This document shows, one piece after another, positions 5,785 through 60,275 of a DNA stretch of 64,000 bases. The notes under the pieces were generated by a model. That model made no database searches, was not told where the DNA came from, and saw only the letters and a list, made by a program, of their open reading frames with translations. The DNA is taken from IMG/VR virus record IMGVR_UViG_3300035703_000005, positions 124,001-188,000 of that record, one strand, 5' to 3'. A program made the position numbers and the translations under genes. Numbering within the stretch: position 1 is the stretch's first letter; every line of letters begins with the position of its first letter.

Positions 5785-6323
5785 TAGTAATAGTGACAAT
5801 AAGTGGACATAATGTATTTGATTCCTTTATTAACTCGCAATCCCGCATGAGGATACTGCCAAGTTGGAGGAAACACCATGACTGATCCTTTTTTTGGAAC
5901 AATCTTTTTATTGTGGTGAGGAAAATGAGTTTCTCCACCAGTAAAATCATCGTTTAGATAATAAAGAAATGCAAGATACCTTCTTGCAGATGCATAATCT
6001 TCAACATCAACGTGTAAATCAAATCTATCTTGACTGCGAGAATGATATTTTTTAATACGAAATTCTTCCAAAAAGAGTCGCGGTGGATACCATCTAGTGT
6101 AATCGGAGAACTCTCTTTTGTAAAGATCTAGAATATTTTTAGTAATTATAGATAAAAATTGTACATGTTCTGGATGTTTTTGATTCACATTCAGTTGTGT
6201 AAAATTTGGAGTTCCCTTATTATTAATGATTTCTTTGTATCCACTTACATCAAATAAACGAATCAAGATATCGCAAGCATTATCATCAAGGACTTTATCA
6301 TAGACCTTGATGAAATCATCCAT
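5784..6323 (-). CDS. 2OG-Fe(II) oxygenase (prolyl-hydroxylase-like)
   Basis: HVD...YLNDDFTGGETHF...FPPTWQYPHAG...KY gives the HxD...H triad. Confidence 0.9.
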   Translation of the reverse strand: MDDFIKVYDKVLDDNACDILIRLFDVSGYKEIINNKGTPNFTQLNVNQKHPEHVQFLSIITKNILDLYKREFSDYTRWYPPRLFLEEFRIKKYHSRSQDRFDLHVDVEDYASARRYLAFLYYLNDDFTGGETHFPHHNKKIVPKKGSVMVFPPTWQYPHAGLRVNKGIKYIMSTYCHYY

Positions 6324-31366: not shown

Positions 31367-31426
31367 TTTGTTTGATACCTCTTTTTAAGTGTTGGGGTAA
31401 ACTGCGGTTTGAGTATTATCTAAAAA

Positions 31427-32599
31427 TCACTTTTTAGCAACGTTGGAAAGCGCGCGTAGATAAGCGTCCATAGAAGGTGAATGATTCACTTCTTGGAAAT
31501 TTGCTTCTTCTGTTAGATTTTCCGTTTCGTTTGCTGGAATACCAGCGTTTCTTGGGAAGTATGACTCCCTAAGAGTTACCAGCTTCTGGTAATAGTCATT
31601 CTCACTCTCAAACTCAACACTTTCAGAGAGGCTTGCAAGCTTGTCCTTTTGGGAAAGAGCTAGACCCTCAGAAACTTGGTTTAGAATTCTGTCAGCGGCA
31701 GATTCTGCAAGTTTCGTATTTAGAGCAATATTCTTTTGAATTTGCTCGTTGAGTTTTGTCTCCATTTCATCAAGTTTTTCTACCATGCTCTCTAGTACAT
31801 CATATTTTTCTTCAGGCATTGATACATAATGTTCTTCAAAAAGACCCTTCATACCAGCGATGAAGGACTCAGTGATCTCAGTCTTGAGACCACTTTCAAC
31901 TGCGAGAGCATTTTCTTCTAACCATTCGGATGCAACATACTCAAGATATGAGTCAACTCTTTCGGTTAGTTCTAGTTTGATCTCTTCGATCTCTTCTGCA
32001 AGAGCAGCAGCATAGTGCTCTTCCAGAGAAGATTGAATTTCTTTTGTTTTAGCGTGAAGAGCAGCTTCAAATACTAATTTTGCTTTTTCTTTGAATTCTT
32101 CGGATAACTCTTCTTCGCCGGAGAGGAGAGCATTTACGTCCTCATCAATGATAGAATTTACATCCTCTTCGACAACTTCTTCTGCATCTTCCTCAGATTC
32201 GGTTTCTTCAACCTCACCTTCTTCGTCACCTTCTTCTGCAATTATTTCTTCTTCAACTTCTTCTTCAACTTCTTCTTTCATACCACCACCTTGACCTGGG
32301 GTAGCAACGGAAGTTGCAGAAGTTGCAGCAGCATCAGGTGCAGAAGCTTTAGCATTTACAACGTCCTTAACTTGCTTAAGAGTTGCGCCAGGTGTTTTTA
32401 ACATGTTGGAATTATCATCTGGCTTGCTGTTTTCTGGAGTTGGGCCTCCAAGATCTTCCCAAGCACCAGTTTGACCAGGAGTTGCAACTGGAGTTGCGCT
32501 CTTGTGTGGTGCTTCCGGTGCAGATGCGTTAGCATTTACAGCGGTTTTGGATTGTGAAGTGCCGGTTTCCATTTCTTGTAAATTTTTACCACGGGACAT
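31427..32599 (-). CDS. gp22: Prohead core / scaffold (gp22)
   Basis: Acidic coiled coil; LSEEFKEKAKLVFEAA, VDSYLEY. Confidence 0.93.
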   Translation of the reverse strand: MSRGKNLQEMETGTSQSKTAVNANASAPEAPHKSATPVATPGQTGAWEDLGGPTPENSKPDDNSNMLKTPGATLKQVKDVVNAKASAPDAAATSATSVATPGQGGGMKEEVEEEVEEEIIAEEGDEEGEVEETESEEDAEEVVEEDVNSIIDEDVNALLSGEEELSEEFKEKAKLVFEAALHAKTKEIQSSLEEHYAAALAEEIEEIKLELTERVDSYLEYVASEWLEENALAVESGLKTEITESFIAGMKGLFEEHYVSMPEEKYDVLESMVEKLDEMETKLNEQIQKNIALNTKLAESAADRILNQVSEGLALSQKDKLASLSESVEFESENDYYQKLVTLRESYFPRNAGIPANETENLTEEANFQEVNHSPSMDAYLRALSNVAKK

Positions 32600-40869: not shown

Positions 40870-43065
40870 TCATTTACCTTGAATAACTACGATTGGTTTA
40901 GATGGATCGGTAGGACTTGGATACCATTGCAGTATAACTGCGCCTGGATAAAACTTTTCAATTTCCGCTTTTACTTCATCTTTAGAAGGTCTCTTCATAT
41001 TTGGGAAGAAGAGTTGAAGATTCATCATTGGTCTACCTCTCCAAGAGAAGAGTATAGTATAAACATTACCAGTAGATTGTATCCGTTGATAATCTTCGTT
41101 TGTAATTTGTCCTGGTTGAATTACGGAGTCTGCAAGAGGTAGAGAGGGTCCTGAAAGCTTCTTAAGTGCGGCATTCTTTTCGTTAGGATTAGTATTACCA
41201 GTTGCAAGATTTCGGATCTTAGCTTGTTTTTGTGCTTGTCTATGTCCAGAACCAATTTCAAAACTTACATTTTCATTTGCTGGATGCACTTTTGCAATAC
41301 TGTAAGGTTGTTCTGGAGCTAATGAGGAAGGTAGTGAGAACATTCTCCAATATCCTTCACCGTATCTACATTCAGATGCAGTTTCATTTTTTTGACATTT
41401 GGGACAATATCTAATTCCCATTTCTTCTGGAATGAACTCTTCTTTCTTCGTCTTATTTCCCCAGTTTTTTGCACCAACCTTACGACACTTAACGAGAGCG
41501 CCAGATGCATATGCAGAAGGCCAAACCTTATAACGAGATTTTACTTTTGAATAACATGCGTCCTTTTCTTCACTAACATCCAAAAATTCTTCTTTTCTAA
41601 TATCTGACTTTGTTACTGATGATGGATAAGAACTCTCTTTACTCTTAGGAACATTTGTTCCCATAATTTCTCTTCTTACTTGACCAGCATCTTTTTTCCA
41701 AAATGGATTCTTCTTAAATTCGTGTTTCTTACCCTTGGGTTGATCCCTCTTCTTTTCCATTTTCTTCTGTGCCGCAGAAAGATTGCCGTGTCTAGCATAT
41801 TCTTTCTCGCCAGGACCACCCTTCTCAAATGATTGAGTATCTGGGTTATCTACACCTAATTGTTTTCTCTTGGCCTCAGACTTTTCCTTTGGAGTATAGC
41901 CTGAAGGATTTGGATTTTTCTTGTCATCCCAAGCAACTTTACCTTCAGTCGCAACCATTTTTGCCTTACCCTTTCTATTGGGATTTGGATCTTTTTCATT
42001 CTTACGACGAAATGCTCTCTCCTCTTCCTTATCGGAGAGCTCTGTTTTCATTTTACTTGAACCGCACTTTGGTTTAGTTGTTTGTCCTGGTTGTTTTGCA
42101 CAGGGTTTCCCTGCGTATTTACCACCCAATTGAACCCAACCAGGGGTGCCATCAGAAGCGCGACTCTTAGTAAACCAGTCACGCAAAGAACTATCACCAC
42201 TTTTGTTTTCATTAATAGAATCCTCCTTCACACAGTTAGGAACGACTTTTTTGCCCTTCTTTTTCATTCCAAGTTGTTTGTATCCATCCCAGCATTTTTC
42301 ATTTAAACCTTTAATCCATTCATCTGGAGTTTTATCATGTTTTTTAACAAATGCATTATGAAGTTCTTTTGCAGTCATATCATGTTCTTTCATGATACTA
42401 CGCATTAATTTATCAATGGAGTCATAAGAAGTATCATCTAATTTTTTAAGTCTACTTTCAAGTTCTTCAACTGCATCTTCATTTATTGGTTGAGTAAAAC
42501 TTTTAAACTTATAATCACTACCTTTAATGATGTCAACAACATGTGCAAAAGTATTACCATTTGCGTCATGAAGTTCTGTCCATTCTTCCTTTACTTTCTC
42601 CATCTTTTTGAGTTTGGAGTAATAATTGGGAATTTCATCTAAATGTTGCAATGCAATATCCATTGCTTCATCATTATCTGTAGTATGTTCATGTTCAACT
42701 TTCATCCCCATCTCAAGTTGTTTTTGGATGATTGATGGAGATACTTTATGCTTTTTTGCGATTTCTTCTACTGATTTATGACCTTTGAAACCTTCTTTAA
42801 CTTCTTTCTTTCTTTCGGTATCATCTTCTCCATGAGAGAGATGATCAGCTACTGTATCAAGATACTCTGCAGCCTTTGTAATCTTTGATTGCACCCATGC
42901 TTCCAAATCACCTTCACCTTTAAGTTTAGTCATCAATCTGATGATTGCAGCCTGTGCAGTTTTAAGTTCTCCACGAGCCATAGAAAACTCAAAATCCTCC
43001 CCAAGAGGTGCGATTGTTTCTAGGTCTGCAATAATAGACCACTCTTTAAAGGTGAGTTTATCCAT
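40870..43065 (-). CDS. 731-aa multi-module protein, putative internal polyprotein
   Basis: A string of unrelated small modules (GMKVEHEHT..., KCWDGYK...PNCV, KDACYSKVK...WPSAYASG) separated by xxE sites; CTAAATA at 43090-43096. Confidence 0.8.
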   Translation of the reverse strand: MDKLTFKEWSIIADLETIAPLGEDFEFSMARGELKTAQAAIIRLMTKLKGEGDLEAWVQSKITKAAEYLDTVADHLSHGEDDTERKKEVKEGFKGHKSVEEIAKKHKVSPSIIQKQLEMGMKVEHEHTTDNDEAMDIALQHLDEIPNYYSKLKKMEKVKEEWTELHDANGNTFAHVVDIIKGSDYKFKSFTQPINEDAVEELESRLKKLDDTSYDSIDKLMRSIMKEHDMTAKELHNAFVKKHDKTPDEWIKGLNEKCWDGYKQLGMKKKGKKVVPNCVKEDSINENKSGDSSLRDWFTKSRASDGTPGWVQLGGKYAGKPCAKQPGQTTKPKCGSSKMKTELSDKEEERAFRRKNEKDPNPNRKGKAKMVATEGKVAWDDKKNPNPSGYTPKEKSEAKRKQLGVDNPDTQSFEKGGPGEKEYARHGNLSAAQKKMEKKRDQPKGKKHEFKKNPFWKKDAGQVRREIMGTNVPKSKESSYPSSVTKSDIRKEEFLDVSEEKDACYSKVKSRYKVWPSAYASGALVKCRKVGAKNWGNKTKKEEFIPEEMGIRYCPKCQKNETASECRYGEGYWRMFSLPSSLAPEQPYSIAKVHPANENVSFEIGSGHRQAQKQAKIRNLATGNTNPNEKNAALKKLSGPSLPLADSVIQPGQITNEDYQRIQSTGNVYTILFSWRGRPMMNLQLFFPNMKRPSKDEVKAEIEKFYPGAVILQWYPSPTDPSKPIVVIQGK

Positions 43066-46910: not shown

Positions 46911-49900
46911 TCACTCTCCCTTTAATTTTTTGATCTCTTCACGAAGTTCGTTGATTTGATCTTGTTGTGTCTTAACGGCTTCAATTAATAATGCTGTTAG
47001 GTTAGCATATGCAACAGACTTATGTCCATTTGCATCTGTTGTAACAACTTCAGGTACAACTTCTTCAATTTCTTGAGCGATTACACCAATTTCAGTTCCT
47101 GGAGTTTCGAGTCTTTCGAAAGTTACTCCACGCATGTTTAGGATCTTATCAAGAGCATCTTCAATAGTTTTAATATTCTTCTTGAATCTTGCGTCAGAGG
47201 ATGCAGTTACCGTTCCACCAAATGTAGCATTATTATTTGTAAGATCAATTTGTAGTGGCCAAACACTATTAACTTGTGTCCAAGTTTCACTATCATTTGA
47301 TCCACGAAGAACATAGAAAATATTAGAGTTGCAATGGATCATTGATACGTTATGATCCGTATCACGTAGATAAATCGTGGGCGTTGTACCTCTCAGTATC
47401 ATTGCACCTTGAACGAATCTATTATTAGTATCCGCAGTGATATTGTGAGTTGCTGCTGTATGTGTTGATGCTGTAATAGTTGCTCCAGTAATATTGCCAG
47501 AACCATCTCTAGCAACAATTGTATTTGCCGTTGCAGCAGTTGCAGAATTTAATCCATCAAGTAGATCGGCATTCAAGTTAGTAACTACTGTTGTTGAAGA
47601 AACTGTAAGTGGTGCAGTTCCAGTTGCAACTGTAGATGTTAAAGTAGTTGCTGAAAGGGCACCAACAAGAGTTAATGCACCAGCTCCGGTTAAAGTTGCA
47701 GCAAGTGTTGTACCACCATACCACTTAAATTGTTGTGAAGTTGTTGGAACACCAGACCATAATGTAGAACCATCAATACCTAATGCATAATCTGCTGCTG
47801 AACCACTAATACTATTATAGAGAACAATCTTAGTTCCAAGACTTCTTGTGGTAAACGCTGGAGCAGCAACTCCAGTTGTACCAAAAGTAATCCAATTGTT
47901 TGTAGTTCCACTAAATGTCAATTGTGCAGTCGATGTTGAACCTGCAGAAGAAAGTTCAAGTCTTCCCGCAAAAATTTGATTACTTGCATCTCTTCTTACA
48001 ATTGCATTTGCAGTGTTTGAAGTATCAGATGCATATCCATTTAATAAAGCAGCATTTAGATTTGAAACCTCAGTTGTAGAAGATACTGTGAATGGAGCGG
48101 TTCCTGTAGAAACTGTAGATGTAAATCTAGTACTTTGGAGTGCTCCAGTAAATGTTGCATTACCACCATTACCCAAAGTAAATACATCTGTTCCACTGGA
48201 GTTTCTGCCAATTAAACTAGTAGTGAACTGTAAGTAGAGATTATTGCTGGAGAATTGAATCTTGCCAGCCTTTTCACCTGTCCAAGTTCCTGTGGTAAAG
48301 GAAATATCATAACCTGTTTGAACTGCAATATCTCTGGTTGTTATAGTACCAGTAAATGTTGGAGTGGTGGTAAGGGTGTAAGCGGTTCCATTACCTAATA
48401 ACAATGATCCACTTGGAGGTAATCCTGTTAATCCAGTACCACCTCTTGTAATTGAAACAGTACCTTGGTGATTAGCCACATCTAAATGATATGAAGAGTT
48501 ATTTCCTCCAAGAGTAGCAGCATCAACATCACCACCTTGAGATGATGTCTTAATTTGAATCTGACCATCAGATCCAACATTAAATGTTGATGTTTTGAAT
48601 TGCGCAACACCAATTGTTGAGTATGTATCAATAGTTGGTAGAGCTCTATTGAGTTTAATTTCAATATTACCATAGTAAGTATTAACTCCAACCCCACCTG
48701 GAGCTAAATCCGAAGAAGTTGCACTAACTTGTACTGGTTGAGTTGTACCAAATCCTACAGAGGAAACGGCCTTTGCCCAAGCAGAGTCTCCTCTCAAGAA
48801 CGTTTCGTTATTTGCACTACCACTACCAGCAAGTCTAGTGGTATTAATAACACCAGTAATGATATTAGAGGCATCAATATCTCCACCACCGACAGCAGAC
48901 CAGTTGGAAGATAGTTGGCCAGAAGTATTAACAACAGAAGTGAAAGATACATTTTGTTTTGTGAACGAAACTATACCACTTCCACTTGTACCTAGTGATA
49001 TTTCATCTAATATTAGACCATTGATAGATGAAAGAGCACTGGATCTACTTTCATGTAAAGTAAATGAGTTTGTTGTTACAGAACCCACGAAGTAATAGAA
49101 TCCTGTAGAAATACCTGATGGTAGAGTTCCAACACCTGCAGCTGCATTAATTTGGATTGGGTCACCTTGAGTAAACCCATGATTTGTAAGTACAACTTGA
49201 TTAGTTTCTGTTGAAAATGCAACTCTTGTTAATGTCTGTGTTCCAGTACCAGAAGCACTAAGATCAATTGGTGTTGTTAACGCATAATTTGAATGAAGTG
49301 TATAGGAACTTATTCCAACTTTTTTGACATAATAAACTTCATTATCAACTAATGGAGTAACAGGAGTTCCCGAAGTGGTATATTTTACTGGATCACCATC
49401 TTCAAATGGGAAGAATGTAGTAGTAACTCTATCATTAGTAAAGTCAATATTTCCACCAACATCAATTCCTGTTCCATTAAATGAGAAACTTGTAGTTGTT
49501 CCTACATTAGTTGAAATTGCAACAGCATTTCTATCTGCAATGTAATCGGCCAATACTGGAGTTGGTGTAAATTTAGCATTATTAAGAAGATTAACGTATA
49601 ATCTAGTCTCCACACTAGCAATTTGAACTGTAAAATTAGATCCTCCACTTCTACCACCAATTGGAGTAGGATCATTAAGAGTCAATAAATCATTGACTGC
49701 AAAATAACGACCACCGGTATTGATGGCAACGGATTGAACTGTACCTGCAGCACTAACCGTAATTGTACCTGTTATTCCTGTACCAATACCACTAGCAGTG
49801 TCAAATCTTACACCAGTATAAATTCCAGCTTGAGAATATCCACTTCCTCCTGTCAGAGATTTTAGAGTTAAAGCAACACCTCTAACCAATCCAGTTGTTC

Positions 49901-52900
49901 CATAACCAACCTGAGGGAAACTTAGTCCCGCATTTGTAGTTATCCCTGTGGTTGTATTGACACCAATGTATGGAGGACGAGTAACAACCCCAGTCACCGC
50001 ACCTTGATTGAGAACACTAACTATAATGTCTCCATTTTGGAAGTTATAAACACTACTGTTATTAAGAATGATATATTGAGAATAAGTATCACTTGTAAGA
50101 ACATATGGAGATGTTGGTTCAATAACAGTATCACCATTTAGTAGACCTAAAGCGGGAATTTGGTTATGTAATTGCAATCTACCATAATTATAAGGTGTTC
50201 TGTAAAAATTAGAAACTTTAGGTGGAATTAGGTCAGCGTTGATCTGTCCAATAGCATTTAATTGAACAATAGCATTAGGAACAGCATTAGTAGATACGGA
50301 TTTATCAATAAACCCGCCAAGTCTACTATTAAGGAATGATCTTGTTGCAAGTTGAGTTGGAACTCTCCTATTCAATGGTCCACCAAGTTCATTATCACCG
50401 AGTCCAGAATCTGTAGAGAATTCTTCAATAGAAACACCACCCGAAAGTGATAGTCTAAGAGAATCGAGAGTACCAATTGTTACAGTATTGTTGAAGATAA
50501 TATTACCCGTTCTGTTGAATGCGGTAATAAAGTCTCCAATCTTGAAGTCACCAAGTTCATTGGTGCCGGATGAGAATACTCTTCCACCACGTTCAGAAAC
50601 TTGTTCAGTTCTGGCATCGGTCTTACCTCCATTTTGTGGTAGGGCATTATAATCAATACCAGATCCAGAATATTCCCAAGTATGACCAGATGAGTTAATA
50701 ATTGATGGTCTATGCCAATGTAACTTATAAGTTTCTGGAAGATTTTGAACACCTTGAATACTTTGACCTACCAAAGTAGAATCAATCTTACTATTAGTAG
50801 ACCAATATGTCGTTAATCCCGCAATAACAGTTACTGCAACACCTATTGGAGATCCGCTATGATCTGTTATATTAAGAATCGTAGTTCCATTGGAGATTGC
50901 AAAGTTTCTTCTAATGCCTTCAGAAAGTTCAACGGAAACAATCAACTCCCTTGAAGTTTGATTGTATGTGTATGCAATACCAACCGCTGTTCCACCAACA
51001 ACTGTTTGAGTAATTTCTCTACCGGAAACAAAGTTAGCTGTGCTCCCAACCCCAGCAAGAGTAAGTTTTTGATAAGAATTATGTCTGTCAAGAACTGATG
51101 ATGCAAAAAATTCAAAAGTATTTTTTTGAAATGTGTGAATACCAGTAGATACCGAAGTCAAATCAACAATTCTAGTTAATCCATCATCTTCTGCTAATCT
51201 AAACGAATTGGAATCATTATAAACAACATAATATTGGTTTCCATTAACTAATCCACCTATAATTCTGTTAGGTATAACTCCTTCATCACCAAAATAAACG
51301 ATACTATCACCATTACTGAATGGATGTGAGGTAATGTTAATAGTATCGTTTGCGATGTTTACAACTCCACCATCAGTTACTGCAGTTCCAACAAACTCTG
51401 ATGTTATTGGACTTGCTTTGAAGTTTTGAGTTACATCTTGATTCGCATTATTGAATATTCTTGCAACATAAAGATCCTGATCAGATCTTCCAAGACCAAC
51501 AACTTTTAATGTAGTTAATCCACCAGAAGTACCTGTAGCAGCAATTCTTCCCCTATCAAATCTAAAGGAATTTGGACTAAATCCGGTAGATCTGAGTGCA
51601 TATAATCCAAAGTTAGTTGCTGAGTTTGTAATAGATAGATATCCGCCGGACTGTGTTAGGGAACCATATCTACAGAAAATTTGGAAACAAGAGACAACCT
51701 GTGCATATCCATCATTAATTGTTCTCCAACCAATACCACCAAAAGAAACCATGGTGAATGCAGCTGCAACCATGGATTTACCTTGTTCAGGTTGATCACC
51801 TTCTAGTGGTATTTCAGCTTCTTGTCTAATAACAGGAATATTTGGAGTTTGTACTTTATTACCATCAACTAGAATACCATTTGCACCTAAGAAAGACAAG
51901 ATGGAACAGTTCTGAATATATGGAGATCTTGAAATAATTGGAGGATCTATTTTCGTGGCATATCCAGATCTAGATGTCAATTGATCCTGTGGGTCATCAA
52001 AAGCAACAGCATAATTCCAAGTACTTAGTGGAATACCAGCCTCGTCAACGGAATCTTTTAATGCAAATCCTGTGACATATACTCCGTTTCTGACCCTGAA
52101 CATATCCTTACCGGAGTTCAGAGGTCTAATAATGGTATTTCTCAGGTTATCACCTACAATTGCAACGTCGTCATAAAGAATAATCGGATTGTCCTCTATG
52201 TATTCTCCAGCCTCGACAAAAATGCAAATTGGTTTAGACTGTGTTTGTGGAATACTAAGTTGTGGCGCTATATTAGTGCCATATCCAACAACACTAGTAA
52301 TAATACCGACATAATTTACAAGCGCGCTTCTAACATCTGCACAATCAGTAATACCAAGATTGATTGAAGAAATTCCAGAAAGACTTCCGGTGAGTACCGC
52401 AGTAGTAAGAATTCCAACAAGAGAGTCAATCGTTGCTTGAGTATTTGCACATACCGCAGACCCTTTGTTAGTTCCGATTCCGGCATCATTTTGAATTGTT
52501 AAATCTTGGTAATTTAACTGGTTAGTTACAGCTAACTTAGAGTAATATGCAAGACTTGTAAAAGCATAACCAGATATTACCTCTTCATTAACTAATCCAT
52601 CTGTTCTAGCGACACCAGTTCCATCAAAATATTTCTTAGTTGCATAAATTATATGTTGATTTGTTCCATAGGAAATATCTTCTGCAACTGCATTAACAAT
52701 ATATCCAAGATCTCTAGCGCACTTTCTCCCACCAACAACATTAGTAGTACCAATACCTACAAAGTCTCTTACATTAAATTCTGAATTAACTAAGAAGTAA
52801 CCATAATTAGTTGTGGTTCCGATTCCAGCAGTACTGCCAGCAGAAATAACACTTGTTACAATACCAACGAGACTTGAAATTGTTGCTCTAACATTTGCAC

Positions 52901-55900
52901 AGGAAGTTGGACTAGTATTTGATCCAGTTGCAGGATCTGCAGTAATAGTTAAATCCTTATTTGTCAATAAATTGCAAACTGCAGATGACATACCAACTTT
53001 AGCTTGCTCAAATGCATAAACAGATTCAGTTTCTTCACCCAAAAGTCCATTACTAATTGGATTTCCTACATTATCAAAATAAAATCCAACAAAACTTCTT
53101 GCATAATTATTACCACCCGTAAATACGTCAGTAGAAATGGCATCAACAAAGTAACCCAAGTCCCTCTTACACTTAGTTTGTGTTGTAGAAATACCTGGAT
53201 AAACGGATACTGTTGCATTCCAAGCATAATCAATAATTTCTTGTCTATTGATTTGAATTAACTTATATGAATCATAGTATCTGGATCTTTCATTCGTTTC
53301 TTCTTCTCCTGGGAAGTAAAATCCAGTAGTCGCTGCAAGAGCGACAGAAGCGAGAGATTTATCAATAATTTCTTGTCTATTACCTACAATTAAATTTCTA
53401 GCATCTTTAGATCTATGGAAATAATTTATATTAATATTTTCTGGATCCTGTGTAATTGTAAAATCAAATATTTGATTTTCTATAATTGGGAACTGATATA
53501 AAGTAGGAGGAGACTGATTGTTAATAATATATTGGCCAATAAATTTGACATAATCTAATGCAAATATGATGGGATCCTCTTCTCCGGCAAAAGTGCCGTT
53601 ATTTACAAATTCAAAGGCAATTTCTCTAGACTTGGAATTCCCACCGAATCTAATGTCATAAGTTAAATACTCTACAACAGATGATATTCCAGCTTTCCAA
53701 GTATTTGCATCAAAATCTGGGAAAATGGTAGAAACACCAATATTTTCATAGTTAAACTGCACATATGCTACCGCTTCTTCAGTAATAAAATCTTTGTTGG
53801 ATTCTAGAAGGTTACCAGCGTCAAGATATCTTTGTCCAGGAATTACAAAACTATCAAATGATGCTAACTGAGCAGCCTTTTTAATTGTTTTAACAGGAAG
53901 AGCTCTACCATCATACGAATCATCTCCATTCTGTGAAGAAACATAATATCTACTTTCAAAAAGTCCAGCACCATTAGTAGTAAATCCTAATGTACCATCT
54001 GGCAATAATCCTAAAAGTTGTCCGGCTGTACCTTTACTTGGAGGTAAAGTTAAGGTGTAATTTGTTGCAACTCCAGAATTCGAAAGTTCAATCGTTACAG
54101 TTTTATTTTGATTACCTAAAAGTGTATTAACACCCACAAAAGATAAGGTAGAAACACCAACTTCATTTAAAGTAGAAATTCCTGAATAGTTTAGATTAGT
54201 ACCGGAAATATTTGTAACAAATCCAGCAGCAACTCTTAGACTATTAATTCCAGAAACTGATGAACTAGTTCCATCAATTGTAACTGTACCAGATCCTACT
54301 GAAAGAATACCAGTAATTCTAACATCTCCCGAAACAATTAAATCAGTATTTCCAATACCTATAGTAACATTACCAAATGTAGATAATCCAGTATAATTAA
54401 TATCAGATCCATTCAGATAAGTTATAAAACCAACAAAAGATTCTAATCTCTGAACAGTACCGATACCTGTTACATCAAAATAAGTTGCAAACCCGGTATT
54501 AGTATAAGAAGTACTAATAAATGCAACATCTAAGGTTGAAAATCCGACCTGAGATGAAGTTAAAATGCCTGAATTTGCATAAAAAACATCAATTCTAGCT
54601 TCATTTATAGATGCGGTAGTTCCAATGCCAACTCCAAAGAATATATCGGATGAATATAATGTATCAATATTGGCGGCAGTAATAATACCGGAATTAATAT
54701 TTGCAGATCCAATATGAGTATCAGTAATGTTAAATGTTGATGATATACCAGAATTAATATACGCTAAATTTATTGAGCTTGTACCTATATTAAAACTAGT
54801 AGCTATACCTACATCAATATTAGCTAAATTTATATTAGCAGTATTGATACCTGCAGTAGTTATTATACCAGAATTAATATAGGCAGAATTAACATATAAA
54901 TCAGTTGATGATAAATTTGAGATCGTAAAGCTAGTTGCAATACCACTGTCTACAAATAGATCATCAACTCTAGCTGTTTGTATTCCAATTTCAGTTGCAA
55001 TACCAATGTTGACGTATAAATTATCTGATCTTAAACTGGAAATTCCAACAGTAGTACCAATACCAACATTAAAGAAAGATGTACTAGCGACAGATGTATC
55101 TACATTGAAATATTGAGCGATTAAATTAGTTGCAATACCAGAAGTAATATATGCTTCATTCAATCTTGCGCTGGAAATTCCGACAGTAGTACCAATACCA
55201 ACATTAATATAAGCTTGATCAATTGTAGCAGTACCTAATCCAGTATTTGTAATAATTCCACTTGTTATATAAGCAGTATCCACTAAAGCAGTAGTAATAA
55301 TTCCTGTATTTACTCTTGCAGTATCTGTGGTTGATTCATTACTTACGTATAATTTAGTTACGGATTCTTCTTGAGCCTCAATTACATCAATATTTGCTTT
55401 TCCTGAAATCGGATCAGTAAAACTAAAACTGGTAGATATACTTAAATTTGAAAAATAGTATTGATTTAATGGACCAAATTCAAAATCTCTCGTTCCTGTT
55501 ACCGAAATAATGTCATTTACTACAATTTCTCCAATATTAATACTTACAATTTGAGTATTATTTGGAGTTCCTGAACTTGGATCGTATAAAATTGAATACC
55601 CTACAACTAAATCAGTCGTTGTTATTCCTGTAATAATTGTACCAGCAGAAGAAACTGTTCCAGATGCAGTTATTACACCAACAGTTCCTGTAGTATTTTG
55701 GGATAAAAATACAGATCCATTTAAAAATGAACTTAATGAAGATATTGTAGTATTCGGAAGAACTCCAAAACCACTTACTGCATAACCAACAGCTAGAACT
55801 GATGTATCAATTCCAACATACGGATCAATTAAATGATTTCCATTTGAAGTTGCAACATAAGCAGAGGTAGATATTTGACTATCAGATGTAAACTCACTTA

Positions 55901-56339
55901 TGGTAATACTGTCAATACCTATAGATATAACAGTTGCAGCTGCAGAAATAGTTGTATTTGTTACATAATATCCTACACGAATATTATTTGTAGCAATTCC
56001 TGTAATAAAATTGTTTGGAGTATCGCTTATGATTCCACTTCTAACTACAGGTTCTTCGTAATTTATAAAAAGACTTCTAGTTGTTAAATTACCAGCAATA
56101 TAAGCATTTCCAATTACACCCAATTCACTTTCTGTTCCACTGGTTCCAATACCAACAGATACTTTATTAATAATATTTTGAGTGGCAGCAACACCCACTA
56201 GATAGTGACCACCAGGTGTAGATCCGTCATGAACAACAGCTACATCCAGATTAGTATCAATCGTTAATTCTCCTACTGCCCCCGTAAATACTAAGTGTTC
56301 TGATGTGGACCCTCTTCTAAGTTGTACCTGTTTGGTCAT
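46911..56339 (-). CDS. Giant tail fibre / adhesin (3142 aa) with C-terminal S74-type intramolecular chaperone
   Basis: N-terminal QLRRGS...FTGAVGELT (Mtd-N-like); GIxT repeats; beta-helix (EAGEYIED, SPYIQNCS); C-terminal SDARFKKNI...GVIAQE...VAY plus coiled coil. Confidence 0.9.
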   Translation of the reverse strand: MTKQVQLRRGSTSEHLVFTGAVGELTIDTNLDVAVVHDGSTPGGHYLVGVAATQNIINKVSVGIGTSGTESELGVIGNAYIAGNLTTRSLFINYEEPVVRSGIISDTPNNFITGIATNNIRVGYYVTNTTISAAATVISIGIDSITISEFTSDSQISTSAYVATSNGNHLIDPYVGIDTSVLAVGYAVSGFGVLPNTTISSLSSFLNGSVFLSQNTTGTVGVITASGTVSSAGTIITGITTTDLVVGYSILYDPSSGTPNNTQIVSINIGEIVVNDIISVTGTRDFEFGPLNQYYFSNLSISTSFSFTDPISGKANIDVIEAQEESVTKLYVSNESTTDTARVNTGIITTALVDTAYITSGIITNTGLGTATIDQAYINVGIGTTVGISSARLNEAYITSGIATNLIAQYFNVDTSVASTSFFNVGIGTTVGISSLRSDNLYVNIGIATEIGIQTARVDDLFVDSGIATSFTISNLSSTDLYVNSAYINSGIITTAGINTANINLANIDVGIATSFNIGTSSINLAYINSGISSTFNITDTHIGSANINSGIITAANIDTLYSSDIFFGVGIGTTASINEARIDVFYANSGILTSSQVGFSTLDVAFISTSYTNTGFATYFDVTGIGTVQRLESFVGFITYLNGSDINYTGLSTFGNVTIGIGNTDLIVSGDVRITGILSVGSGTVTIDGTSSSVSGINSLRVAAGFVTNISGTNLNYSGISTLNEVGVSTLSFVGVNTLLGNQNKTVTIELSNSGVATNYTLTLPPSKGTAGQLLGLLPDGTLGFTTNGAGLFESRYYVSSQNGDDSYDGRALPVKTIKKAAQLASFDSFVIPGQRYLDAGNLLESNKDFITEEAVAYVQFNYENIGVSTIFPDFDANTWKAGISSVVEYLTYDIRFGGNSKSREIAFEFVNNGTFAGEEDPIIFALDYVKFIGQYIINNQSPPTLYQFPIIENQIFDFTITQDPENININYFHRSKDARNLIVGNRQEIIDKSLASVALAATTGFYFPGEEETNERSRYYDSYKLIQINRQEIIDYAWNATVSVYPGISTTQTKCKRDLGYFVDAISTDVFTGGNNYARSFVGFYFDNVGNPISNGLLGEETESVYAFEQAKVGMSSAVCNLLTNKDLTITADPATGSNTSPTSCANVRATISSLVGIVTSVISAGSTAGIGTTTNYGYFLVNSEFNVRDFVGIGTTNVVGGRKCARDLGYIVNAVAEDISYGTNQHIIYATKKYFDGTGVARTDGLVNEEVISGYAFTSLAYYSKLAVTNQLNYQDLTIQNDAGIGTNKGSAVCANTQATIDSLVGILTTAVLTGSLSGISSINLGITDCADVRSALVNYVGIITSVVGYGTNIAPQLSIPQTQSKPICIFVEAGEYIEDNPIILYDDVAIVGDNLRNTIIRPLNSGKDMFRVRNGVYVTGFALKDSVDEAGIPLSTWNYAVAFDDPQDQLTSRSGYATKIDPPIISRSPYIQNCSILSFLGANGILVDGNKVQTPNIPVIRQEAEIPLEGDQPEQGKSMVAAAFTMVSFGGIGWRTINDGYAQVVSCFQIFCRYGSLTQSGGYLSITNSATNFGLYALRSTGFSPNSFRFDRGRIAATGTSGGLTTLKVVGLGRSDQDLYVARIFNNANQDVTQNFKASPITSEFVGTAVTDGGVVNIANDTINITSHPFSNGDSIVYFGDEGVIPNRIIGGLVNGNQYYVVYNDSNSFRLAEDDGLTRIVDLTSVSTGIHTFQKNTFEFFASSVLDRHNSYQKLTLAGVGSTANFVSGREITQTVVGGTAVGIAYTYNQTSRELIVSVELSEGIRRNFAISNGTTILNITDHSGSPIGVAVTVIAGLTTYWSTNSKIDSTLVGQSIQGVQNLPETYKLHWHRPSIINSSGHTWEYSGSGIDYNALPQNGGKTDARTEQVSERGGRVFSSGTNELGDFKIGDFITAFNRTGNIIFNNTVTIGTLDSLRLSLSGGVSIEEFSTDSGLGDNELGGPLNRRVPTQLATRSFLNSRLGGFIDKSVSTNAVPNAIVQLNAIGQINADLIPPKVSNFYRTPYNYGRLQLHNQIPALGLLNGDTVIEPTSPYVLTSDTYSQYIILNNSSVYNFQNGDIIVSVLNQGAVTGVVTRPPYIGVNTTTGITTNAGLSFPQVGYGTTGLVRGVALTLKSLTGGSGYSQAGIYTGVRFDTASGIGTGITGTITVSAAGTVQSVAINTGGRYFAVNDLLTLNDPTPIGGRSGGSNFTVQIASVETRLYVNLLNNAKFTPTPVLADYIADRNAVAISTNVGTTTSFSFNGTGIDVGGNIDFTNDRVTTTFFPFEDGDPVKYTTSGTPVTPLVDNEVYYVKKVGISSYTLHSNYALTTPIDLSASGTGTQTLTRVAFSTETNQVVLTNHGFTQGDPIQINAAAGVGTLPSGISTGFYYFVGSVTTNSFTLHESRSSALSSINGLILDEISLGTSGSGIVSFTKQNVSFTSVVNTSGQLSSNWSAVGGGDIDASNIITGVINTTRLAGSGSANNETFLRGDSAWAKAVSSVGFGTTQPVQVSATSSDLAPGGVGVNTYYGNIEIKLNRALPTIDTYSTIGVAQFKTSTFNVGSDGQIQIKTSSQGGDVDAATLGGNNSSYHLDVANHQGTVSITRGGTGLTGLPPSGSLLLGNGTAYTLTTTPTFTGTITTRDIAVQTGYDISFTTGTWTGEKAGKIQFSSNNLYLQFTTSLIGRNSSGTDVFTLGNGGNATFTGALQSTRFTSTVSTGTAPFTVSSTTEVSNLNAALLNGYASDTSNTANAIVRRDASNQIFAGRLELSSAGSTSTAQLTFSGTTNNWITFGTTGVAAPAFTTRSLGTKIVLYNSISGSAADYALGIDGSTLWSGVPTTSQQFKWYGGTTLAATLTGAGALTLVGALSATTLTSTVATGTAPLTVSSTTVVTNLNADLLDGLNSATAATANTIVARDGSGNITGATITASTHTAATHNITADTNNRFVQGAMILRGTTPTIYLRDTDHNVSMIHCNSNIFYVLRGSNDSETWTQVNSVWPLQIDLTNNNATFGGTVTASSDARFKKNIKTIEDALDKILNMRGVTFERLETPGTEIGVIAQEIEEVVPEVVTTDANGHKSVAYANLTALLIEAVKTQQDQINELREEIKKLKGE

Positions 56340-56387: not shown

Positions 56388-59300
56388 TTAAATGATAACA
56401 ATATAAGTTCTAGGAATTTGGAATGAATTGGCAATAGATACGCTCGATATTTCTTGAATATAGATTGTTCCAACACCGGCATAAGTTGATTTTACAAATG
56501 ATTCCAATCCAGAAGAGAATCCAAATAAAGTACCGAAGGTGTCTTTATATTCCTTGGTTAGAGAATTTGTTGAAGAACCAATAATGTTAATTGTTCCCAA
56601 TCCATCTGGTGATGGAATGAATATGATATCTGGATGGATTAACTCTCCAGATAAAGTTGCAGTTCCGGATCCAACTTGTTCATAAGTAGAAATCTTTCTG
56701 GTGATTGAATTTCCATTAATATTAACTAATCCAATACCAACAATCGAATATTCTAATTCAATTCTAATGTCTGCAGATCCACCAATTTGAATTAATATGG
56801 TAGACTCTGATATTTCTGCAGAGTATGATTCGGAACTTCCGGATAAAGTTGAGAAACTTCCAGATCCTACGTAGTTAATTACATTTTGTTCTAATAAGGA
56901 AGATGGAGTAAATATTGTTCCTACACCAATCTCAGAATATGTGAACGAAACTTTTTCATAAGACCCAAAAATTGTATAATTAATAGTTTCGTCATATTCA
57001 TATGTTGCAATCTCTTTTATGGATGCAACCCCACTAAATCCAAATAAAACAGTATTTTCTGGGGTATTAACAACAAAACTTACCTGTGCTGAATATTGAT
57101 TATCGCATGTAAGTTCTGCATTATCACAAGTATCATAATCATTATCTACACCATGATTTACGAATCTAATTAATCCTCTTGATGGATAATTTGGAATCTC
57201 AATCGATCTTGCGGAACCATTTAAAGTTATAGAACCATTTCCACTATAAGAATTACTTGTTTTTTCAATAATACTTCCACTAATGACATAAAGAACTTCA
57301 ATTTCTGGAGTTTGAGCGGAATAAACTTCGAAAGAACTTCCACTAATATTAAACAGTTGAACATTTTCTGGAATTTGGGATGATAAACTTTCTAAACCAG
57401 TTCCAGAAATATTAATTATTCCGGATCCAAGATATGCATTTGATTCTTTTAATGTAGAGGCACCAGATATTAAATAAGTTCCAACACCAATATAAGAATC
57501 TATTTCTTTCTCAATAGATGGAGTTGTTTGTTGTGATATGAATATAGTTCCAGAAGTTCCTGGATTCTTATCATTACCATAATATCCATAAACTGCAATT
57601 TCTCTAGTAGATGCAATTCCGGAAAGTGAAATAACACCAGTTCCATTATAATTTGATTTTGTGAAACTCCAAGATTTGCCAACACCTGGTCCCGGAATCC
57701 ATGGATAAGATTCTTGTGGACTGTATCCGGTGATTATATTGAATCGACCATTTCCTGTGTAAGGTGTTAATGGACTATACTTGGCAATATTTCGAGTTTG
57801 ATCGAAAGTAATTGTGCCGATGCCAGTATTTGGAACTTTATCATTAATTGGATATCTATTAGAATATGTTCTGGCATCACGAGTATTTCCTTCACTATCT
57901 GGAGTAAATCCTACACCTCTTAAGAATTTAATTCCAGTAGTACCAACTCCAATATTTTGTTCAATACCATAATGTGGAGTATAATCAACATTAGGATGTA
58001 CAAGTGGTTGGCCAGATAAGGTTATTGGTGGTGGAGTTTGAGTGGTTCTATATTCTAGATTTAAATTATATAAAGATTGTCCACTGATTTGGAATAGTTG
58101 AGTATCTTCCGGAGTTTGAGCAGAATAGGATTCTAAAGATACTCCAGATAATGTTATTGAACCTGTTCCATTATAAGACTCTGTATTTCTCTCTACAGAT
58201 ACTTCGGAGAGCGTTAAAGTACCAAATCCAACATAAGACTCGGTGTTTTTCTCTATAGAAACTCCAGAAAACGTTAAAGTACCAAATCCAACATAAAGAT
58301 TCGTATCACTTTCTGCAGATACTCCAGAGAAAGTTAAAGTACCGAATCCAACATAAGATTCTGTATTTTTCTCTACGGATGTTCCAGAAAGGGTTAAAGT
58401 ACCTAATCCAACATAAGACTCTGTATTTTTCTCTACGGATATTCCGGAAATAACAAATAGTTGTATATCTTCCGGAGTTTGAGCAGAATAAGATTCTAAA
58501 GATACTCCAGAGAAGGTTAAATTACCTAATCCAATGTAAGATTCTGTATTTTTCTCTACAGATGATCCAGATATTTGAATACCAGTTGTTCCAATGCCAA
58601 TATTTTTTTCAATTCCATAATGAGGTGTATAGTCAATAAATGGATGTAAAAGTTCTCCAGAAATGGTTAATGTTGCTACATCTCCGAAATATGAATAATT
58701 AGAAATCTCACTATTAGAACTAATACCTGATAGTGAATATAATGCAGATTGTCCCTCATATCCCTTTCTGGTAAAGCTCCAAGATCTTCCAACTCCCGGT
58801 TCTGGAAGCCATGGATATGATTCTTGTGGACTGTATCCATTGATATAATTAATTTCCCCAAATGGATATATTAATTCTCCAACTATAGATGAAGTAACTA
58901 CGCTAATTTCACCAAAGTCAACAGTAGGTCCACCATTTGATAAAGAATTATAATTATCAAATAATTCTGGCGCATTACTTACAAGTCCATAATCTAATGC
59001 ACCTTCAGTTATGGAACTTTCATTATAAAAATATGTAATACTTTCAATTAAATTACCAAATCCAAATAAAGTTCCACTACTAATATAAGATTCTGTTTCG
59101 GATTTGAGAGATGTTCCAGAAATAACAAATAGTTGTACATCCTCCGGAGTTTGAGCCGAATAAGACTCCAAAGCTAGTCCAGAGAATGTTAAAGTACCTA
59201 ATCCAACGTAAGATTCTGTATTTTTCTCTACAGATATTCCAGAGAATGTTAAAGTACCGAATCCAACGTAAGATTCTGTTTCCGATTCTGTGAGCGTTGA

Positions 59301-60275
59301 TGATAAACTTATAGACCCAGAAACAACTTCGGAATAAGTAACTTTTACTATTGCATTACCATCAATATAAAGCCTATAATTTGGAGCACATATAGCAGAT
59401 CCACTTAGAGACATTCCTCCAAATGGATATATTATTGGTATTACCTGATTAATTACAAATTCAAAATCATCTATTTTTGGATCTATATCTTCCGATACTT
59501 GGCCATAATCGACCGCAACACCAGAAAAATAATCTACAATATTTCCGTAATCAACTACATTATCAGTTTGTATGGAAGACTCATTATAATCAAATGTAAT
59601 ACTTTCTTGTGCAGTATTTAAACTGAACAAACTACCAGATGTATTATAATTACCAATTGTGAATTTTTCTTCAGCAGAACCAGAGAATGTTGCTAATCCG
59701 TTACCAACATAAGACTTTGATTCTGACTCTAAATCTACTCCAGAAACGGAAAATAGTTGTGTATCTTCTGGAGTTTGGTATATAACTCTTGATTCCGAGA
59801 TACCAGTTATTGTGTAGAGAACGGTATCTTCTACGGGATCGATTGTAAATGACTCCAAGACCGTCTCTGCGACGGTTGTATCCAGTCGGAGTGTACCAGA
59901 AGATAAATATGCATTTACAGTCCTTTCTAGACCATTGCCTATCTCAAATACTGTGCCATTACCTACCCATGTAAATACTACATTTTCGGTAATAGTTTGA
60001 GTTGTAAATTCAAATAGTATTCCAGAAGAAACGTATTGATATGTTGCAGATTCTTGTGATGAATCTAGGGTAATTAAATTTCCATATGGAATTAATGATT
60101 CTGTAGTAGTAATCTGATACCAATCATCTTCTAAGAAATTAAATTCCGGATTACTGTCAGTTATAGATCCACTATCAACTGAAGACGTTGAGGCAGAAGT
60201 AATCGATCCATAATCTTCCTCAGAATATGGATTATTTACTTCCGGATTGTCTAGACTATAAACATAGATAGTCAT
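56388..60275 (-). CDS. Large acidic repeat-rich virion structural protein (1295 aa)
   Basis: DYG repeats; 20-aa SVEKNTESYVGxGTLTFSG repeats; structural-gene context. Confidence 0.8.
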   Translation of the reverse strand: MTIYVYSLDNPEVNNPYSEEDYGSITSASTSSVDSGSITDSNPEFNFLEDDWYQITTTESLIPYGNLITLDSSQESATYQYVSSGILFEFTTQTITENVVFTWVGNGTVFEIGNGLERTVNAYLSSGTLRLDTTVAETVLESFTIDPVEDTVLYTITGISESRVIYQTPEDTQLFSVSGVDLESESKSYVGNGLATFSGSAEEKFTIGNYNTSGSLFSLNTAQESITFDYNESSIQTDNVVDYGNIVDYFSGVAVDYGQVSEDIDPKIDDFEFVINQVIPIIYPFGGMSLSGSAICAPNYRLYIDGNAIVKVTYSEVVSGSISLSSTLTESETESYVGFGTLTFSGISVEKNTESYVGLGTLTFSGLALESYSAQTPEDVQLFVISGTSLKSETESYISSGTLFGFGNLIESITYFYNESSITEGALDYGLVSNAPELFDNYNSLSNGGPTVDFGEISVVTSSIVGELIYPFGEINYINGYSPQESYPWLPEPGVGRSWSFTRKGYEGQSALYSLSGISSNSEISNYSYFGDVATLTISGELLHPFIDYTPHYGIEKNIGIGTTGIQISGSSVEKNTESYIGLGNLTFSGVSLESYSAQTPEDIQLFVISGISVEKNTESYVGLGTLTLSGTSVEKNTESYVGFGTLTFSGVSAESDTNLYVGFGTLTFSGVSIEKNTESYVGFGTLTLSEVSVERNTESYNGTGSITLSGVSLESYSAQTPEDTQLFQISGQSLYNLNLEYRTTQTPPPITLSGQPLVHPNVDYTPHYGIEQNIGVGTTGIKFLRGVGFTPDSEGNTRDARTYSNRYPINDKVPNTGIGTITFDQTRNIAKYSPLTPYTGNGRFNIITGYSPQESYPWIPGPGVGKSWSFTKSNYNGTGVISLSGIASTREIAVYGYYGNDKNPGTSGTIFISQQTTPSIEKEIDSYIGVGTYLISGASTLKESNAYLGSGIINISGTGLESLSSQIPENVQLFNISGSSFEVYSAQTPEIEVLYVISGSIIEKTSNSYSGNGSITLNGSARSIEIPNYPSRGLIRFVNHGVDNDYDTCDNAELTCDNQYSAQVSFVVNTPENTVLFGFSGVASIKEIATYEYDETINYTIFGSYEKVSFTYSEIGVGTIFTPSSLLEQNVINYVGSGSFSTLSGSSESYSAEISESTILIQIGGSADIRIELEYSIVGIGLVNINGNSITRKISTYEQVGSGTATLSGELIHPDIIFIPSPDGLGTINIIGSSTNSLTKEYKDTFGTLFGFSSGLESFVKSTYAGVGTIYIQEISSVSIANSFQIPRTYIVII
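58141..58560 (-). repeat. Coding 60-nt tandem repeats (more copies near 59090-59290)
   Basis: GTTAAAGTACC.AATCCAACATAAGA recurs with a 60-nt period. Confidence 0.85.

Follow-up and report, generated by a model that had tools for sequence, protein, structure and literature searches.

Phycobiliprotein-like helical units and conserved counterparts of the bilin-contact triad in a giant fibre protein of a T4-like cyanophage

In a 64,000-nucleotide stretch of the IMG/VR virus record IMGVR_UViG_3300035703_000005 (positions 124,001 to 188,000 of that record; the whole stretch is hereafter called the window), one unbroken open reading frame (ORF) encodes a giant fibre protein of 3142 amino acids (aa). 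We found that this protein contains an array of helical domains that are, with high confidence, homologous to phycobiliproteins, both in fold and in descent. Purifying selection acts very strongly on the cysteine, arginine and aspartate of these units that correspond to the residues holding the bilin in phycobiliproteins, and giant fibre and baseplate proteins of T4-like cyanophages widely use such units as building blocks.

In cyanobacteria, the hosts of these phages, and in red algae and cryptophytes, phycobiliproteins are known as bilin-carrying antenna proteins, and the occurrence of a large family with the pigment-binding triad in virion proteins of the most abundant marine cyanophages is unexpected. 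A search of the open-access literature returned no description of phycobiliprotein-like domains in phage fibres, and sequence and profile searches of the PDB returned no solved structure containing the domain; automatic annotation already flags the Pfam family PF00502, to which the phycocyanin alpha subunit CpcA belongs, on such proteins, including an Atlas cluster. What is new is the setting of the phycobiliprotein fold, as a tandem repeat of a phage fibre, and if chromophorylation were shown, the units would constitute a new kind of viral photoreceptor.

Array units and phycobiliproteins

A preliminary description, made from the sequence alone, had placed three to four helical, phycobiliprotein-like repeats at positions 52280-53835 (aa 835-1353), between PVKTIKKAAQLA (aa 815-826) and IFVEAGEY (aa 1373-1380). 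Using a hidden Markov model (HMM) of the unit, which was built from the best unit and then run over 120 homologues, we located the array at aa 834-1356 (52272-53840), in close agreement with this placement. All the strings that had been quoted are present: RYLDAGN... at aa 837, RYYDSYK... at aa 1020, KCKRDLGY... at aa 1056 (Cys1057), KCARDLGY... at aa 1206 (Cys1207), and CANV, CANT and CADV at 1147, 1297 and 1333, respectively. The helical character of the array was borne out by an AlphaFold model (predicted local distance difference test, pLDDT, 78.1; predicted template modelling score, pTM, 0.76), in which aa 836-1353 are all helical and beta strands begin at aa 1371, but the count of repeats had to be revised to a degenerate unit, a hairpin, a complete unit, a truncated unit and an extra helix. 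The features are as follows:

46911-56339, minus strand: giant fibre gene, 3142 aa, directly upstream of the gp13/gp14/gp15 neck genes (ORF list and translation).
53862-53897, minus strand: PVKTIKKAAQLA (aa 815-826), located by sequence; this helix looks like the cap at the N-terminus of right-handed beta-helices, and the array begins after it.
53424-53834, minus strand: unit A, aa 836-972, degenerate and Cys-less (domain E = 1.4e-5 with the unit HMM; modelled as helices by AlphaFold).
53337-53414, minus strand: hairpin or 'mini B-helix' repeat, aa 976-1001, RSKDARNLIVGNRQEIIDKS... (weak HMM match; two model helices at aa 971-1002).
52830-53294, minus strand: unit C, aa 1016-1170, complete, with Cys1057-Arg1059-Asp1060 and Cys1147 (HMM, 251 bits).
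53169-53171, minus strand: codon of Cys1057, which is aligned with the bilin-binding Cys84 of phycocyanin alpha and is invariant in 56/56 homologues.
52899-52901, minus strand: codon of Cys1147, the second conserved Cys, directly before the last helix (invariant in 56/56 homologues; present in 98% of 496 units).
52380-52784, minus strand: unit D, aa 1186-1320, without the first (B) helices (HMM, 100.9 bits, profile positions 39-154).
52272-52379, minus strand: additional last-helix copy, aa 1321-1356, which contains Cys1333 (HMM fragment, profile positions 125-154).
50640-52247, minus strand: probable right-handed beta-helix domain, aa 1365-1900, beginning with ICIFVEAGEY (model strands and Atlas look-alikes).

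Unit D, which lacks both the A and the B helices, starts at the Cys-bearing helix and carries Cys1207-Arg1209-Asp1210 together with Cys1297. No other ORF of the window carries a unit detectable with the unit HMM. The array probably interrupts a right-handed beta-helix after its cap helix and ahead of its first rung: the motif of PVKTIKKAAQLA, the AlphaFold strands and the language-model look-alikes suggest that this segment is the cap, and the look-alikes of aa 1365-1900 in the ESM Atlas are NosD, Beta_helix and DUF1565 entries at 0.87-0.91, which serve as leads only. The insertion at the start of a beta-helix that had been proposed is thus supported by the strands and by these look-alikes, but the identity of the beta-helix is tentative because aa 1373-1880 have no Pfam match even at E <= 10.

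Homology of the units to phycobiliproteins is concluded because four independent tests, i.e., Pfam searches of relatives, a profile search of the PDB, profile-profile alignment and fold prediction, agree on the same register and the same family. In the first test, the window segment itself scored 18.4 bits against PF00502 (E = 0.0022; profile positions 29-98 of 155), below the gathering score of 22.2, and PF00502 is not listed by Pfam for the whole 3142-aa protein at E <= 1. Three relatives, P0001, P0004 and P0089, pass this threshold with 39.5, 40.6 and 27.6 bits, respectively (these relatives carry more units), and the majority of the 120 homologues have precomputed PF00502 matches. When 42 diverse complete units were scanned singly, 14 matched PF00502 at E <= 0.01 and none matched any other Pfam family; the scan of the window unit, member 1 of the 42, was uninformative, as was the comparison of unit C to the ESM Atlas (best score, 0.74).

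The PDB is reached by profiles only, since a direct sequence search with aa 794-1880 returned nothing. The alignment of the 42 complete units (A2) gave 58 matches at E <= 10, and all of these but one (57) are phycobiliproteins. The top match, C-phycocyanin alpha 7efv_A (E = 2.1e-4), aligns unit positions 8-62 to residues 39-104, with kCkRDigyf of the phage units on KCARDIGYY. A profile of 67 units without the first helices found phycocyanin alpha, around Cys84, in 31 of 33 PDB matches.

For the profile-profile comparison, we translated 108 CpcA and 88 CpcB sequences from cpcBA loci of cyanobacterial genomes, which were fetched using a degenerate DNA pattern. The phycocyanin alpha and beta strings given in the preliminary description match these translations. 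With hhalign, A2 aligned to CpcA with a probability of 94% (P = 1.4e-7), and the profile of truncated units of the unit D type (A3) with 94.3% (P = 1e-7). The alignment to CpcB is in the same register and weak (P = 0.012). Both the PDB profile and hhalign place the phage Cys on the bilin-binding Cys84, as had been claimed. It should be noted that none of the sequence methods (PDB profile search, hhalign) aligned an X-Y region, and that a forced global hhalign alignment of the C-terminal half to CpcA or CpcB was not significant; therefore, residue mapping beyond helix E is unreliable.

The fourth test is the predicted structure. The AlphaFold model of a single unit with its preceding hairpin (aa 965-1178; alignment of 69 sequences) has a pLDDT of 87.6 and a pTM of 0.85, and the top 50 Foldseek matches of this model in the PDB are all phycobiliprotein beta subunits, with template modelling (TM) scores of 0.46-0.56 when normalised by the query and 0.55-0.76 when normalised by the target (7lj0_B, 0.76). 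The best match, 3v57_B, has E = 1.2e-3, TM scores of 0.52 (query) and 0.62 (target) and a root-mean-square deviation (rmsd) of 3.1 A over 164 columns; for the best matches in general, the rmsd is 2.3-3.5 A over about 164 columns. The larger array model returned the same families. In the model, unit C has a globin-like phycobiliprotein fold comprising helices A, B, E, F', F, G and H, which is the fold that the preliminary description had proposed; a fold unlike that of globins, which would have refuted its proposal, was thus not seen.

When 1.84 billion representative proteins were searched with the unit profile at E <= 1e-3, at least 1289 clusters were retrieved, 407 of them with E <= 1e-30; the matched proteins are giant, with up to 36 matched stretches per protein. 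For example, relative P0001 (2941 aa) contains 9 hairpins and 12 units, and the distant relative P0126 contains 30 units, in a gene context that is uninformative. Among 50,697 phage records, the domain is carried by cyanophages alone (309 records with the window segment as query, 353 with a unit of the cyanophage P-HM2). Among predicted viral structures, the 25 significant matches are cyanophage tail or structural entries or unnamed and uncultured-phage entries (S-CAM1, S-H9-1, S-WAM2, S-PM2, S-ShM2 and others).

The hairpin has a distribution of its own. A 42-aa helix-hairpin repeat, which corresponds to the B-helix region of phycobiliproteins alone, occurs in up to 9 tandem copies in relatives (P0001, P0004 and others), e.g., at aa 365-761 of P0001. 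The hairpin is a sub-repeat that has grown independently of the full unit.

The Cys-Arg-Asp triad and the second cysteine

In phycobiliproteins, the bilin at position 84 is held by Cys84 through a thioether, by Asp87 through the pyrrole nitrogens and by Arg86 through a propionate. In three profile alignments, C-x-R-D of the phage units falls column for column on Cys84-Arg86-Asp87. In all 56 homologues compared, Cys1057, Arg1059, Asp1060, Cys1147, Cys1207, Arg1209 and Asp1210 are invariant, and Cys1297 is kept in 55 of the 56. We then consider the 496 units of the 120 proteins, the mean identity of which is about 30-38%: C-R-D and the second Cys are all present in 471 of these, with the first Cys (Cys1) in 99.4%, Arg in 96.4%, Asp in 99.4% and the second Cys (Cys2) in 98%.

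The exceptions are informative as well. In about 22 units, Cys1 is replaced by Trp, Tyr or Phe, and Arg and Asp are almost always replaced along with it. Unit A of the window has Trp, Ala and Gly in place of Cys, Arg and Asp and lacks the second Cys, while the Asp56 and the Gly-Gly-Asn of the family are kept; the fold thus does not require the triad, although its three residues are kept together and disappear together. Such a pattern is that of a ligand-binding site and differs from the prediction for a disulfide.

The second cysteine sits, in the model, directly before the last helix and after a long loop. In phycobiliprotein beta subunits, a second bilin is attached to Cys153, which belongs to the G-H loop and immediately precedes helix H, and the predicted structure puts Cys2 in the topological place of this residue. 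In the translated CpcB sequences, the site around Cys153 reads GDCSALVSEI. The forced global hhalign alignment sets Cys2 on Cys153 of CpcB and Asp8 of the unit on Asp39 of helix B, with a non-significant probability of 0.12. The equivalence of Asp8 to Asp39 of CpcB is weakened, Asp8 being equally invariant in hairpin-only repeats.

Trypsin cuts on both sides of Cys1 (K-C-K-R, 53109-53174; K-C-A-R, 52659-52724) and leaves two to three residues, so that neither a bilin adduct nor a disulfide at Cys1 could have come to light in standard tryptic proteomics of virions.

Candidate roles of the units

The nearest isolated relative is the Synechococcus phage S-SCSM2R, which is 60.8% identical in amino acid sequence over the array segment and has the same gene order as the window; its orthologue of the fibre protein is ORF112, labelled 'large exoprotein'. 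Mass spectrometry of virions purified on CsCl revealed this orthologue, which the genome paper labels a heme-utilisation or adhesion exoprotein; the authors were doubtful of a structural role (PMC12801897). The gene order together with the presence of the orthologue in virions indicates that the window belongs to a T4-like cyanomyovirus and that the protein is a virion fibre, and the latter finding supports the display of the array on the particle that the preliminary description had envisaged.

The functions that the preliminary description had suggested, i.e., bilin binding, pigmented or light-responsive adsorption and host mimicry, are hypotheses. On the strength of the selection pattern of the triad and the context, we lean tentatively, and with rather less than even confidence, to the reading that the units may still bind a linear tetrapyrrole covalently at Cys1 (Cys1057 and Cys1207). 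The pigment would come from the host pool or from the products of phage ho1, pebS and pcyA, attachment would be autocatalytic or lyase-assisted and would take place during assembly in the cytoplasm, and the released virion would carry pigmented fibres. Absorbed light might then change the conformation of the fibre and so gate adsorption. Such a light-gating role is in our estimate unlikely, and the same low weight goes to the complete scheme in which virion units are chromophorylated in the infected cell and then act on the free particle as a photoreceptor gating fibre deployment. The GAF, PHY and PAS families are absent from the Pfam scan of the whole fibre protein; any photoreception would use the phycobiliprotein fold instead.

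Some cyanomyoviruses adsorb only in the light, independently of host photosynthesis, and light-sensitive receptors or tail fibres have been proposed to be involved (PMC6628666). Among the phages with known phenotypes, S-PM2 (light-dependent) carries 5 units with KC[KR]RD and SCANV in p091, a 'tail fiber protein'; P-HM2 (no adsorption in the dark) carries 2 Cys-bearing units in a giant gp7-like protein; and P-HM1, the adsorption of which is also light-dependent, has a match 78% identical to the P-HM2 unit. In P-SSM2, which adsorbs in the dark, no unit was found in the whole 252-kb genome (six-frame search, two HMMs, E <= 10) and there is no giant gene upstream of gp13. This pattern is consistent with a role of the units in light-dependent adsorption, although it comprises four phages, two of which are near-identical close relatives, a limit that weighs against the bilin reading.

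The roles of phage pcyA, pebS, ho1 and cpeT have been called a mystery or unresolved (PMC3037559). Phage bilin genes are essentially confined to cyanomyoviruses (PMC10452541), and T-type lyases are the only kind in phages of clusters A and B (PMC10665884). Several of these genes lie close to structural genes: cpeT of P-HM2 (L005:19862-20266) between gp5 and tail-fibre genes, cpeT of P-SSM4 (L133:16633-17076) between a tail protein and gp5, and the heme oxygenase gene ho1 of P-SSM2 (L131:23710-24411) just upstream of the tail-fibre cluster. The fibre genes that adjoin phage bilin genes, including the P-HM2 tail-fibre genes beside cpeT, contain no phycobiliprotein-like unit.

The explanation that competes best with bilin binding, and that we consider nearly as likely, is a pigment-free structural exaptation. 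A captured cyanobacterial phycobiliprotein gene would have been duplicated into a helical repeat that adds length and rigidity to trimeric fibres and baseplate proteins, and Cys, Arg and Asp would contribute to packing, to contacts between chains or to the coordination of a metal on the three-fold axis, with no bilin involved. Two groups of observations weigh against bilin binding, and the first of these speaks at the same time for exaptation: (i) arrays of 12-36 units in giant proteins resemble a structural building block; (ii) helices X, Y, A and B are missing from most units, and the B-E loop, the part of phycobiliproteins that lies over the bilin, has about 10 residues fewer than its phycocyanin counterpart; (iii) the family has near-invariant residues of its own, Asp56, Asn62, Tyr72, Glu87 and Asn108, which are not phycobiliprotein-like; (iv) Arg5, Asp8 and Asn16 are 99-100% conserved even in 300 hairpin-only repeats, so that invariant polar residues can be purely structural here; (v) orphan last-helix fragments retain Cys2 in the absence of a pocket, and Cys2 must therefore have some role that needs no bilin pocket; (vi) Cys-less units are tolerated, as in unit A of the window and in the gp7-like protein of P-SSM4; and (vii) phage bilin and lyase genes do not strictly co-occur with the units.

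The last point can be illustrated with three genomes. P-SSM4 has cpeT and only Cys-less units (in the first 113 kb, all large structural genes included), Syn1 has units and no cpeT, and P-SSM2 has ho1 and pebS with neither a unit nor cpeT. A candidate assignment of cpeT as a dedicated lyase for Cys2 does not hold as a strict rule, since phylogenetic profiles show no strict co-occurrence with Cys-bearing units; host lyases or autocatalytic attachment would thus be needed. The P-SSM4 protein, PSSM4_080 (L134:8145-30083), contains divergent units at aa ~4473-6179, in which Cys1, Arg and Cys2 are all replaced; this is a naturally Cys-free form of the module, in a phage that has retained cpeT.

The second group concerns the extent of the likeness and the pigment itself. 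Sequence similarity is limited to helices B to E, i.e., to about 55-65 residues (CpcA 40-104), the helices beyond E match phycobiliproteins by predicted fold only, and the Foldseek E-values are modest (1e-3 to 2e-2). To our knowledge, no pigmented cyanophage preparation has been reported.

What holds us to bilin binding in preference to exaptation is the identity of the conserved residues. Conservation at 96-99% falls precisely on the three positions that contact the bilin in phycobiliproteins. Residues that contact a ligand usually drift after the ligand is lost. Furthermore, the triad is lost as a set while the structural invariants stay, which marks it as dispensable for the fold and yet selected.

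A disulfide staple, which the preliminary description had named as its alternative, appears improbable to us. It would join Cys1 of the E-like helix to Cys2, within or between chains, and stabilise the virion in oxic seawater. The nearly equal conservation of the two cysteines fits this explanation, as do the absence of both from the degenerate unit A and the concentration of 7 of the 11 cysteines of the protein in the array region (aa 1057-1372). However, the partners are not inherited together: C-R-D occurs without a detectable Cys2 in 64 units (7 complete and 57 truncated), and all 66 orphan last-helix fragments keep Cys2 and lack Cys1. In the window, two Cys1 face three Cys2, and Cys1372, the sole other candidate partner, is Ala in 6 of 18 relatives. 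The joint conservation and loss of Arg and Asp with Cys1 is left unexplained, and assembly occurs in the reducing cytoplasm. In phycocyanin, the Cys84 and beta-Cys153 sites are tens of angstroms apart, and a bond between them would be hard to reconcile with this geometry if Cys2 corresponds to beta-Cys153. The disulfide is thus weakened as an account of the array but keeps a low probability.

Far less probable again is mimicry directed at the host, in which the units would work in the infected cell before or during assembly, and not on the virion, for example as decoys of host bilin lyases, of NblA/Clp degradation or of phycobilisome linkers. The closest sequence match is indeed phycocyanin alpha of the host lineage, and these phages also carry nblA and cpcT/cpeT, which target phycobilisomes, but the units form part of fibre and baseplate proteins that are present in the virion, are carried by late structural genes only, and lack the X-Y helices for alpha-beta pairing. 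A chance or convergent likeness of an unrelated helical repeat, for which one could cite the score of the window protein below the Pfam threshold (18.4 versus 22.2 bits), the Foldseek E-values and the short alignable sequence, is scarcely credible given the agreement of the four tests described above.

Should the units bind bilins and gate adsorption, a photoreceptor virion would explain the light-dependent adsorption of S-PM2, P-HM1 and P-HM2, phage ho1, pebS, pcyA and T-type lyases would gain a substrate of the phage's own, and the array would be without precedent as a light sensor within a virus particle and would define a new class of photoreceptors with the phycobiliprotein fold. The finding bears on why cyanomyoviruses carry bilin synthesis and lyase genes even where the host has no phycobilisomes (PMC3037559), and on adsorption that depends on light independently of host photosynthesis (PMC6628666). 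Even without pigment, the units would be a clear case of a host photosynthetic fold recruited as a structural fibre repeat.

Fibre gene, its surroundings and known systems

Outside the array, the fibre protein has the following recognisable domains at its ends:

56217-56327, minus strand: N-terminal Mtd_N domain, aa 5-41 (Pfam PF18454, 33 bits versus a cutoff of 26.3).
47043-47198, minus strand: C-terminal Peptidase_S74 intramolecular chaperone domain, aa 3048-3099 (Pfam PF13884, 60.3 bits, E = 2.2e-16).

The protein matches the PHROG tail-fibre families phrog_5342 and phrog_4527, and several PHROG tail-fibre families match its C-terminus. The Peptidase_S74 chaperone is a hallmark of trimeric fibres and spikes; together with the probable beta-helix, it points to a trimeric fibre or spike. 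In the N-terminal third of the protein, short degenerate repeats with many G-I-x-T and 'AYI(N/T)SGI' motifs follow one another over a long segment (aa ~330-790; 53970-55350) and presumably make up a beta-structured fibre shaft.

The neighbours of the fibre gene are those of a T4-type neck protein and gp15, followed by the terminase and sheath genes. Directly upstream lies a 1295-aa ORF (56388-60275, minus strand) with no Pfam match. The corresponding S-SCSM2R protein, ORF111, carries the label TolB and is present in virions (PMC12801897); the 1295-aa ORF therefore probably encodes a further structural protein with a misleading label. Located between the small terminase and the large terminase region, a 731-aa ORF (40870-43065, minus strand) contains DUF5661 and an IF2_N-like segment. 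The GC content has a local peak of 0.458, against about 0.35 elsewhere, at 30001-32000, over a 464-aa ORF (29972-31366) that may be the major capsid gene, judging from where it lies among the late genes of T4-like phages.

Among known proteins, CpcA is the best relative of the units in sequence: helices B to E are in register (unit 10-63 on CpcA 40-104), with K-C-x-R-D-[IL]-G-Y of the phage on K-C84-A-R86-D87-I-G-Y. CpcA is a free subunit of 162 aa, which pairs with CpcB via X and Y and forms (alpha-beta)3 rings, whereas the phage units are fused head to tail in virion proteins of 2000-7900 aa (a typical phycobiliprotein subunit has about 160-185 aa), have the shorter B-E loop, mostly lack X, Y, A and B, and show no detectable similarity after helix E. 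The beta subunits of phycoerythrin and phycocyanin (3v57_B, 2vjh_B, 7lj0_B) are the best structural matches of the AlphaFold unit and share with it a long G-H loop that ends in a Cys before the last helix; beta-Cys153/155 is served by T-type lyases. The sequence similarity to CpcB is not significant (P = 0.012), and the correspondence of Cys2 to Cys153 comes only from topology and the forced alignment.

ApcE (LCM) is the only well-known phycobiliprotein domain inside a large multidomain polypeptide, and it attaches its bilin autocatalytically, which provides a precedent for attachment independent of lyases. Chains of 1020-1045 aa from phycobilisome cores (8imi_0, 7vea_aM), possibly those of ApcE, are among the weaker Foldseek matches. 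In contrast to the phage proteins, ApcE has a single phycobiliprotein domain with linker (REP) repeats, is cellular, belongs to the phycobilisome core, and its bilin Cys is not at position 84.

On the phage side, endosialidase-type tailspikes and the L-shaped fibre of T5 combine a C-terminal S74 domain with a right-handed beta-helix, as is probably the case here; we know of no globin-like insertion between the cap helix and the first rung in either of them. The closest parallel in position is T4 fibritin (wac) or gp12, which occupies the same late-gene slot directly upstream of gp13-gp14-gp15. The Pfam scan of the fibre protein returned no fibritin or gp12 family, and the PHROG labels are generic tail-fibre names; the fibre protein is about 6 times longer than T4 fibritin or gp12 and ends in the S74 chaperone rather than a foldon. 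T4 whiskers are environmental sensors that control the deployment of the tail fibres, and sensing of this kind is the role that is proposed here, for light, for the phycobiliprotein-like units.

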